Source: Octopus sinensis
Lineage: Eukaryota
Assembly: GCF_006345805.1 (NCBI RefSeq)
Contig: NW_021828418.1
Coordinates: forward strand, 1 to 7,419
Length of the DNA: 7,419 nt
Direction: 5' to 3'
In this document: positions 4,629 through 6,628 of the stretch, piece after piece
Layout: each line of letters begins with the position of its first letter
How positions within the stretch are numbered: the first letter of the stretch is position 1
Translations under genes and position numbers: made by a program
Notes under the pieces: generated by a model
Told to the model about the DNA's origin: nothing
Databases searched by the model: none
The model's input: the letters and a program-made list of their open reading frames with translations, nothing else

Positions 4629-4916
4629 TATAATTCTGGTGCACTTCAGAGAAATATTTCAATATTTACGGAGCAGGGCACCAGGTGTCGCAATATTACA
4701 ATGACAATCCTATTTCGTTGAATAATATGAAAACATGGATATTAAATAAGCTAGATGTTGAAGGAGTTTTCGGTTTTTAATTTTATATAAGTAGGCACTT
4801 ATTTCTGTTAATAATATCGCTGTGTTGCTTTAATTTTCTGCGTCCAGTTGGTGCTCGAATAGAACTAATTTCTGTGCTTGGCAATTATTTGAAACTGGAG
4901 AGGTAAATTAACAATA

Positions 4917-5356
4917 TCTCTCTCTATATAAACGGCAGTTTGTCTGTCTGTGTGTCTGTGTGTCTGTCAGGTTGTACCCTCACCCTCACCACGGCTTTCA
5001 ACCGATTCTGATGAAACTTGACACACACATAGCCCAATATCATAATTCAAATCTAACGCAGTGAAAATTTTGAAAAGTTCCCCCAGTTCTGAAAAAAATC
5101 GATAAATTCGACATGGGGTCGAGAATCTAAGCTTTTTATATGCAACACATTTTCTGTCTAGGGGACACAACTCGACCTTTTTATCGCCCAAAAGGACAGC
5201 TAGGAACATCGTATACACAGAAGTATTCGAGTGAAGCGAAGACATTGCAACCTACACATGCGCCTTCATTTCCTAGAGGGAAAGGACTAGGTTGGGATTA
5301 GTTGTTGCCTACTAGAGGCTCTTACATACCCGGGCAACGCCGGGCTATACTGTTAG
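4917..5356 (+). mobile_element. Non-autonomous Helitron, family X (440 bp)
   Basis: It begins A|TCTCTCTCTATATAAA followed by a (TGTC) tract, and ends CCCGGGCAACGCCGGG-CTATACTG-TTAG|T. The hairpin is at 5329-5344 and the terminal CTAG reads TTAG. There is no TSD, and removing it restores a contiguous AACAATA^TACTCAT. Confidence 0.85.
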
Positions 5357-5484
5357 TACTCATATAAACGATGGTGAGTTTCATTCAGTTTCCCTCGGCC
5401 TCGAAGCTAAAGTCGATGACGCTTGTCCAAGGTCGATCTAATGATTCAATGATAAGCGAGGCTCTGTGGTTAGAAGCTTGCTTC
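5357..5484. mobile_element. Rearranged relic of SINE family A, copy 1
   Basis: CATATAAACGATGG..TTCAGTTTCC and GCTAAAGTCGATGACGCTTGTCCAAGGT match 1188-1283 in the same orientation. They are followed by the SINE head in the opposite orientation. Confidence 0.7.
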
Positions 5485-5665
5485 CACTGCACATGTGCGA
5501 ATAAATATTGAAGGAGTTTTCGTTTTTAATTTTATATAAGTAGGCACTTATTTCTGTTAATAAAATCGTTGCGTTGCTTTAAATTTCTGATTCCATTTGA
5601 TGCTGGAATAAAACTAATTTCTGTGCTTGGCGATAATTTGAAACTGGACACCTAAATTAACAATA

Positions 5666-6263
5666 TCTTTATATATAAAAGTAAAGTTGTGTGTCTGTCC
5701 CCTTCGATTTAGATTCCTAACTACTCCCACATTTTGCGGTGCAGTTTAACCAAAACCGAGTATCTTATAGTCGGGATTCATATCGAGCCCTTCTGCGTAT
5801 TAGCGCGCGTCTACGATGAGTCTACGATTTAAAAAAAAATTACCATCATTTTTTTTCTATTTTAATGCATTTTTTTCGCTATTATATAAGGGAAGTAACT
5901 CTCTAAAAATGTTTACGATGAGTCTACGATTTAAAAAAAATTCGCCATCATTTTTTTCCATTTTAATGCATTTTTTGCTATTATATAAGGAAAGTAACTC
6001 TCTAAAAATGTCTACGATGAGTCTACGATTTAAAAAAAAAATTACCATCATTTTTTCCATTTTAATGCATTTTTTCGCTATTATATAGGGGAAGTAACTC
6101 TCAAAATGTCTACGATGAGTCAATGATTTAAAAAAAAAATTACCATCATTTTTTCCCATTTTTAATGCATTTTTTTGCTATTATATAAAGGAAGTAACTC
6201 TCTAAAAATGCTTATATTGTTATTTCCCTTACAAACCCGAGCAACGCTGGGCGATACTGCTAG
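5666..6263 (+). mobile_element. Non-autonomous Helitron, family Y, copy 2 (598 bp), with an internal 4x ~100-bp tandem array
   Basis: It begins A|TCTTTATATATAAAA and ends CCCGAGCAACGCTGGGCGATACTGCTAG|T. It is the same family as 2834-3232. Confidence 0.9.
5810..6210 (+). repeat. Tandem array of four ~100-bp units
   Basis: Units are 5810-5911, 5912-6010, 6011-6108 and 6109-6210. Each runs T(C/T)TACGATGAGTC...AAGTAACTCTC(T)AAAA(A)TG. Confidence 0.95.
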
Positions 6264-6369
6264 TACTCATATAAACGATGGTGAGTTTCATTCAGTTTCC
6301 GTCGGCCTCAAAGCTAAAGTCGATGACGCTTGTCCAAGGTCGAGGCTGTGTGGTAAGAAGCTTGCTTCC
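6264..6369. mobile_element. Rearranged relic of SINE family A, copy 2
   Basis: Paralogue of 5357-5484. Positions 6345-6364 are the exact reverse complement of 1326-1345. Confidence 0.7.
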
Positions 6370-6628
6370 ACTGCGCATGTGCGAATAATTGTGGTGTTCG
6401 ACACCAAAGCGGTGAGAAATGCTTTTGAAGCCGTCTCGAATTGAAAAAGTTTGAAGCTCCATTGTTAAGTAAGATTCTGTTTTTTTGGGTCCAGTGGGAA
6501 TTTTTGTTGAGAATTGATTTTGTACAGACAGAAAGTCCTACTGGATTCAGGATTCTGGTTCTCCCTGCATGAGCGGATATTTTCTCTCGCTGAATTGTGA
6601 GAATTTTGTTTGGGGCCGTCTTCGTCTT

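Follow-up and report, generated by a model that had tools for sequence, protein, structure and literature searches.

Locus and question

Why should two different Helitrons occupy the same nucleotide, one in each copy of a short tandem duplication? The locus that raises this question is situated in a 7,419-nt stretch of Octopus sinensis DNA, which was analysed over its whole length and is referred to here as the window. Global alignment of 4700-5520 against 5480-6420, together with blastn of the parts, recovered the order L1-X-R1-L2-Y-R2, in which L and R are the left and right arms of the duplicated unit, while X and Y are the elements inserted between them:

4757-4916, plus strand: L1, left arm of unit 1, 89.9% identical to L2 (143 of 159 positions), ending in ...TTAACAATA
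4917-5356, plus strand: X, Helitron-like element of 440 bp, bordered by the ends of the L/R homology, with a 5'-TC and a 3' hairpin and no terminal inverted repeat (TIR)
5357-5504, minus strand: R1, right arm of unit 1, by alignment to the SINE at 1188-1345 a degenerate SINE copy with its head segment inverted, 96% identical to R2
5505-5665, plus strand: L2, left arm of unit 2 (global alignment and blastn)
5666-6263, plus strand: Y, Helitron-like element of 598 bp (alignment, blastn and termini)
6264-6389, minus strand: R2, right arm of unit 2, by homology the same SINE remnant as R1 (global alignment, blastn and local alignments to the SINE)

The right arms R1 and R2 agree at 120 of 125 positions (96.0%), apart from one 23-bp indel in R1 at about 5434-5456, and the divergence between the two units as a whole is 7.4%. 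An earlier sequence-only reading of this DNA had proposed the same arrangement of arms and elements, element sizes of 440 and 598 bp, and identities of about 89% for the left and 96% for the right arm; the arrangement was recovered, the sizes match exactly, and the identities are those measured here. The same reading took the unequal divergence of the arms as a hint of conversion of the right arm. The difference between L and R is not significant (Fisher p = 0.067), and right-arm gene conversion was dropped.

X and Y are inserted in the same orientation, both at AACAATA^TACTCATATAAACG, and each is bounded by ...TAAATTAACAATA on its left and by TACTCATATAAACGA... on its right. The identical nucleotide that had been claimed for both units is thus borne out, and the orientation is the same as well.

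At the junction between the units, read directly from the sequence, R1 ends in GCGAATAA and L2 begins with ATATTGAAGG, and AATAA is also present upstream of L1 (AATAAGCTAGATGTTGAAGG), which fits a small tandem duplication via AATAA microhomology. The breakpoints are located about 160 bp and 130-150 bp from the element ends, not at Helitron termini, which speaks against the suggestion that the duplication was itself a product of Helitron activity. No further copy of L was found inside the window by blastn. As for smaller features of the right arm, the extra 23 bp of R1 are absent from R2 and carry CGA repeats at their borders, and a perfect 10-nt palindrome, GCACATGTGC, is located at 5489-5498, close to the end of R1.

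Helitron hallmarks of X, Y and a third copy

X starts with TCTCTCTCTATATAAACGG and ends in ...CCCGGGCAACGCCGGGCTATACTGTTAG; Y starts with TCTTTATATATAAAAGT and ends in ...CCCGAGCAACGCTGGGCGATACTGCTAG. Besides these two elements, a third Helitron-like copy, Y', was identified on the opposite strand of the window, and the features relevant to all three are as follows:

5329-5344, plus strand: 3' hairpin of X with a CCCGG/CCGGG stem, 12 nt from the 3' end (motif search; DNA fold of -5.4 kcal/mol)
5809-6210, plus strand: tandem repeat inside Y, a 99-bp unit present in 4.0 copies with 89% matches (TRF; repeat families D11 and D12)
6236-6251, plus strand: 3' hairpin of Y, CCC-G-AGC / GCTGGG in a bulged register, 12 nt from the 3' end (motif search and fold)
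2834-3232, minus strand: Y', a further Helitron-like copy, 399 bp long and belonging to the Y family (inverted repeat I1, alignment, blastn, termini and flanks)

All three copies start with 5'-TC, reading TCTCTC... in X and TCTTTA... in Y and Y'. The 3' ends of Y and Y' are CTAG, in agreement with CTRR, and that of X is TTAG, which departs from CTRR at the first base. The hairpin stem ends 12 nt from the 3' terminus in both X and Y, and the hairpin of Y' is decayed. In the bulged register, a G:C pair of X is replaced by an A:T pair in Y, a compensatory difference by which pairing is kept; the fold energies of the X and Y hairpins are not significant relative to shuffled sequences (z = -1.3 and -0.4, respectively). 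No TIRs were detected, as the first 50 nt compared with the reverse complement of the last 50 nt scored at shuffle level (p = 0.20-1.0). X, Y and Y' are all flanked by A on the 5' side and T on the 3' side, and TA is found on both sides too, which is compatible with a 2-bp TA duplication.

Set against the defining features of canonical Helitrons (PMC13286980, PMC4778049), X and Y look like canonical non-autonomous Helitrons, while the elements themselves would be new, uncharacterised members. Their assignment to Helitrons in the sequence-only reading is accordingly upheld by the 5'-TC, the 3' hairpin, the A and T flanks and the lack of TIRs. Two other classes were considered and rejected, namely Helentron/Helitron2 elements, since inverted termini are lacking and the flanks are A and T rather than T and T, and a Tc1/mariner-type MITE, for which TA is present on both sides, yet no TIRs are.

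Over the first 246 nt of Y, blastn gives 90.8% identity with Y' (9.2% divergence); Y' has about one 99-bp repeat unit, a short unique stretch and a Y-type 3' end. Its flanks, TTTTATATATA on one side and TATATATATAAG on the other, belong to a (TA)n tract and are unrelated to L and R. Because of these unrelated flanks, the Y type is mobile by itself, and Y' shows that Y-type elements transpose on their own, as units with exactly these termini. Neither this copy nor the SINE identity of R was part of the earlier reading. Together, the three Helitron-like copies make up 19% of the window. A 92-aa open reading frame in the interior of X had no homologues in the database search, and the window ORFs at 6175-6444 and 5857-6159 had no database record. 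Metagenome, viral and prokaryotic-genome contigs were also scanned with three DNA patterns (the Helitron 3' terminus, a 24-mer specific to R and a gapped pattern for the SINE), with 0 matches.

Relatedness of X, Y and Y'

X and Y are alike only in about 35 nt at each end: 25/34 positions agree at the 5' end, and 31/36 do so at the 3' end. Between these ends, alignments score at shuffle level on either strand (p = 0.58-0.90), as expected from the earlier statement that only the termini are common to both, and the interior of X is unrelated to Y' too. The window contains three occurrences of the common 3' motif CCCGRGCAACGCYGGGC, where 0.00 would be expected. Y and Y' are much closer to each other, with 33/34 identical positions at the 5' end and 33/35 at the 3' end, and the termini of Y match those of Y' (66/69) better than those of X (56/70; p = 0.008). 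At all five variable positions, the 3' end of X is unlike that of Y.

The termini of X and Y are also more diverged from each other than the duplicated flanks are (p = 0.003). This holds strongly for the 5' termini (p = 0.002); for the 3' termini, the excess over the flanks is not significant (p = 0.19). Neither chimeric termini nor a remnant of a second element was found at either junction. By these sequence comparisons, X and Y are separate lineages and not one insertion that diverged in place, since Y belongs to the Y family from its first to its last base.

The target site in a SINE tail

Two further items are needed to describe the site before it was filled:

1188-1345, minus strand: reference copy of the SINE family giving rise to R, with a TA-rich tail to its left (about 1146-1195) and no Helitron inserted
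Joined L+R, the reconstructed empty site: TTAACAATATACTCATATAAACG

R aligns to the SINE at 1188-1345 in three segments, each of which scored above all 300 shuffles in local alignments. It is the tail end of the SINE that adjoins the Helitron site; the head segment, comprising roughly the last 45 nt, has the opposite orientation to the remainder. Searches of the window for tRNAs and for Rfam families at the gathering threshold returned nothing, R and the SINE at 1188-1345 included. Judged by its homology to that copy, R is a degenerate SINE remnant and, because its tail end lies at the site, the place of insertion is the SINE tail. The insertion point is about 4 nt past the SINE 3' end, within the decayed TA-rich tail, and reads ...CGTTTATATGAGTA^TATTGTTAATTT in the orientation of the SINE. 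All three Helitrons of the window have inserted at ATA^TA, and the 3' flank pattern T-A-NNN-ATATAA is found both at the X/Y site and at the independent Y' site.

How improbable is the coincidence?

An empty unit contains 27 AT dinucleotides, which correspond to about 50 oriented sites. Provided that each unit received one hit, the probability of the same site and the same orientation is about 0.02 under uniform AT targeting and about 0.12 when the count is confined to the top AT-richness class, with its roughly 8 oriented sites; both values are conditional in this way, and the chance that both 300-bp units are hit at all is a matter of genome-wide copy numbers. The X/Y site is within that top class and is not unique there, as about 7 other oriented sites are equally AT-rich. 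Since it is one of these 8 or so sites, an ordinary preference for AT-rich DNA covers part of the coincidence. The coincidence is real, and it is statistically suggestive rather than compelling. The earlier claim that two hits at one site are unlikely by chance therefore stands under uniform AT targeting and is weaker than implied under AT-rich targeting, where the probability rises to about 0.12.

A structure-defined or sequence-defined hotspot had also been proposed for this site. Folding of the reconstructed empty site as ssDNA gave energies no different from those of shuffled sequences (z between -0.4 and +0.5), which leaves the structural version without a signal, and the sequence version is weakened because the site is one of roughly 8 top AT-rich ones and comes only 4-5 of about 50 when sites are ranked by similarity to a Helitron 5' end. 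With regard to this resemblance, the 3' flank T-ACTC-ATATAAACG, which is the start of R, resembles the 5' end of X (p of about 0.008). That the target mimics a Helitron 5' end was nevertheless rejected: the motif is the SINE 3' end, within the unit, the site reaches only the above rank, and across the window its score is equalled or exceeded by 424 of 1691 sites. According to previous studies, Helraiser targets AT in a strongly AT-rich context, which is most marked on the 3' flank (PMC4778049), and Helitrons have been described in a review-type statement as having no preference for unique sequences (PMC8788227).

Origin of the same-site occupancy

The reading that we prefer, with a probability of about 0.55, is that the duplication came first and that two related Helitrons subsequently inserted, independently of each other, at the same preferred A^T. 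A segment of about 300 bp, comprising the minus-strand degenerate SINE R with its decayed, TA-rich tail, plus some 160 bp of downstream flank (L), would have been tandemly duplicated at the AATAA microhomology. Afterwards, two different non-autonomous canonical Helitrons would have inserted independently, one per unit, both in the same orientation at one A^T of the SINE tail (ATA^TA, 4 nt past the SINE 3' end). The related termini suggest that X and Y were mobilised by the same or a related RepHel transposase, and the re-use of the site would reflect the target preference of Helitrons, AT in an AT-rich context, in a locally element-dense region. No replacement or conversion event would be needed. 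In this scheme, we infer the order of events, the independence of the insertions and the common transposase.

Independent insertion is favoured by the unrelated flanks of Y', by the separate lineages of X and Y, by the three insertions at ATA^TA, by the Helitron hallmarks of all three copies, by the place of the X/Y site in the top AT-richness class and by its position in a SINE tail. Previous studies showed that distantly related Helitrons cluster and are at times directly adjacent (PMC4067079, PMC5148889), which was also counted in its favour. Against it, sites that are equally AT-rich and several that are more similar to a Helitron 5' end remain unused, with a probability of only 0.02-0.12 for the coincidence, and the tail of the SINE at 1188-1345, of the same family, carries no Helitron.

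Among the alternatives, a strong sequence-specific hotspot survives best, unlikely as it is. L-R, or the tail of a SINE subfamily, would then be a dispersed family in which RepHel reads the site beyond its AT-richness, and many copies would be filled at this point. Although neither AT-richness nor 5'-end resemblance singles out the site, two elements have inserted there in the same orientation. As a member of a SINE family, R provides a target context that is repeated in the genome, and the 3' flank pattern recurs at the independent Y' site. However, this reading draws on just two independent loci, no Helitron occupies the window's other SINE copy, L does not recur in the window beyond the duplication, and the published work finds no unique-sequence preference for Helitrons (PMC8788227).

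Somewhat less probable is the replacement of one element by another, in which one Helitron, for example Y, predates the duplication and was exchanged for the other type in one unit. The incoming X might insert at the A/T(C) junction of the resident 5' end, with the resident being excised or lost later, or RepHel might exchange strands at the resident's own cleavage sites. Such a junction of host A and element T at a resident 5' end is an A^T, the natural cleavage site of RepHel (PMC4778049); insertions at or within 2 bp of a second Helitron's 5' end, as well as tandem insertions, are known (PMC5148889), and Helitron excision is on record (PMC4683698, citing Li and Dooner 2009). The 9.2% divergence between Y and Y' would also allow Y to be of the same age as the duplication, the units of which differ by 7.4%. 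Nevertheless, replacement requires two precise events instead of one, and a documented Helitron-for-Helitron exchange was not met with in the literature searched. Moreover, there is no remnant of a second element and no chimeric terminus, Y is of the Y' type from end to end, and the 3' end of X differs at all five variable positions. Conversion guided by the homologous ends, which the sequence-only reading had offered as a route for such replacement, is argued against in particular, because chimeric termini would be expected and Y is entirely of the Y' type to both end bases.

An assembly artefact has a low probability, lower than that of replacement. Two alleles, or dispersed paralogues, of an L-Helitron-R arrangement would have been wrongly joined head to tail, for which the highly repetitive nature of the region (SSRs, SINEs and Helitrons) provides an opportunity. 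However, arms that are 4-10% apart and differ by a 23-bp indel are far apart for alleles, the R1/L2 junction is clean with its AATAA microhomology also present upstream of L1, and the occupation of the same site by two different elements would still be required.

Finally, a single ancestral insertion, duplicated together with the unit and then diverged or converted in its interior via the common termini, is very improbable: the 3' termini (31/36) are not significantly beyond flank divergence, but the 5' termini (25/34) are far beyond it, Y matches the unlinked Y' across both termini and the first 246 nt, the interiors have nothing in common, and chimeric termini are lacking.

Comparison with known systems

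In their general organization, X and Y resemble canonical Helitron1-type non-autonomous elements, such as the HelibatN families and rice Mothra, which start with 5'-TC, end in CTAG, carry a short hairpin 10-15 nt upstream of the 3' terminus, lack TIRs and insert between A and T, leaving no evident target site duplication (PMC4683698, PMC13286980, PMC4778049). The TTAG end of X, in place of CTRR, is unlike these. Families of such elements are set by about 30 nt of each terminus and have unrelated interiors, and X and Y are alike in this respect; the block of internal tandem repeats in Y has a parallel in rice Mothra (PMC4683698).

Clustering of Helitrons has been described in bat, maize, Drosophila, rice, Fusarium and Metarhizium, where distantly related elements lie near or immediately next to one another, in the same orientation, some of them at or near the 5' end of another (PMC4067079, PMC5148889). 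Unlike such clustered elements, X and Y are not adjacent and instead occupy a homologous position in two paralogous host units. Helraiser, a reconstructed bat Helitron, selects AT within an AT-rich region of about 20 bp, most strongly beside the 3' end of the element (PMC4778049); the three sites described here read ATA^TA and have a 3' flank rich in AT. The Helraiser data describe a compositional preference without re-use of single nucleotides, whereas the present site was re-used despite equally AT-rich neighbours. In the literature searched, no description of two different Helitrons at a homologous nucleotide in paralogous host copies was found, nor a precedent for same-site or recurrent insertion.

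Targeted transposition and replacement of P elements in Drosophila provide a case in which an element with the same ends replaces another at the exact nucleotide. There, the break left by excision of a cut-and-paste TIR element is repaired via end homology. The termini of X and Y are, in contrast, family-specific to the last base, which argues against a mechanism of this kind.

Composite Helitrons that arise by end bypass, such as HelibatN539, combine a 5' end with a downstream 3' end in the same orientation around host DNA (PMC4224331). The stretch 4917-6263, running from the 5' end of X through R1-L2 (309 bp of host DNA) to the 3' end of Y, has this end-bypass geometry and would make a composite of 1347 bp; there is no sign of its having moved. 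The arrangement of an X 5' end, host DNA and a Y 3' end is the geometry that gives rise to composite, host-DNA-capturing Helitrons.

At this locus, SINE tails act as landing pads for Helitrons. The locus is a single anecdote on target choice, compatible with an ordinary preference, and represents no new kind of element. It seems doubtful to us that the A^T in the SINE tail is a genuine hotspot for Helitrons at single-nucleotide level, or a place where one Helitron is exchanged for another; if either were true, sequence-directed or resident-directed targeting would be added to a superfamily described as lacking unique-sequence preference. Should genome-wide data confirm that two families re-use one nucleotide, a further level of target recognition would be indicated, or else replacement at the ends of resident elements, and such sites would offer a natural substrate for biochemical tests of target cleavage by RepHel.

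Surrounding sequence

By appearance, the window is SSR-rich and SINE-rich eukaryotic DNA. Very long compound microsatellites at 170-660, 1750-1985, 3460-3850 and 3960-4510, with the motifs (TG)n/(TA)n/(GA)n, (CT)n/(CTAT)n, (ATAC)n and (AAT)n, take up a large share of it, and (TA)n tracts border Y' as well as several of the SINE tails.

The plus strand carries, at 6620-7265, a SINE-like element with a tRNA-like head, GGAGGCGCAATGGCCCAGTGGTTAGG..., for which neither ARAGORN nor Rfam gave a call. It carries an internal tandem duplication with a period of 256 bp (6748-6965 / 7004-7221, 97% identity) and, by eye, apparent flanking direct repeats, TTCGTCTT, at about 6625 and 7269. The sole database relative of any ORF in the window, found via a SINE-derived ORF, is a 1.9-kb Logan contig, L001 (SRR11869385), which is evidently from another species; its positions 876-1325 are about 80% identical to part of this SINE, and no Helitron is present on the contig.

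At 1997-2223, a perfect 22-nt inverted repeat, TTATTTCTGAATATATATATAT / ATATATATATATTCAGAAATAA, surrounds 183 nt that end in an A-rich run. This arrangement may represent either a small foldback or MITE-like structure, or sequence inserted into the middle of a palindromic (TA)n site. As well, short GC-richer blocks at 3355-3460 and 3860-3960, on either side of the (ATAC)n array, resemble by eye fragments of other SINE-type repeats, e.g., GTCGGACGTCGGCGGAATTTGAACTCAGAAC...
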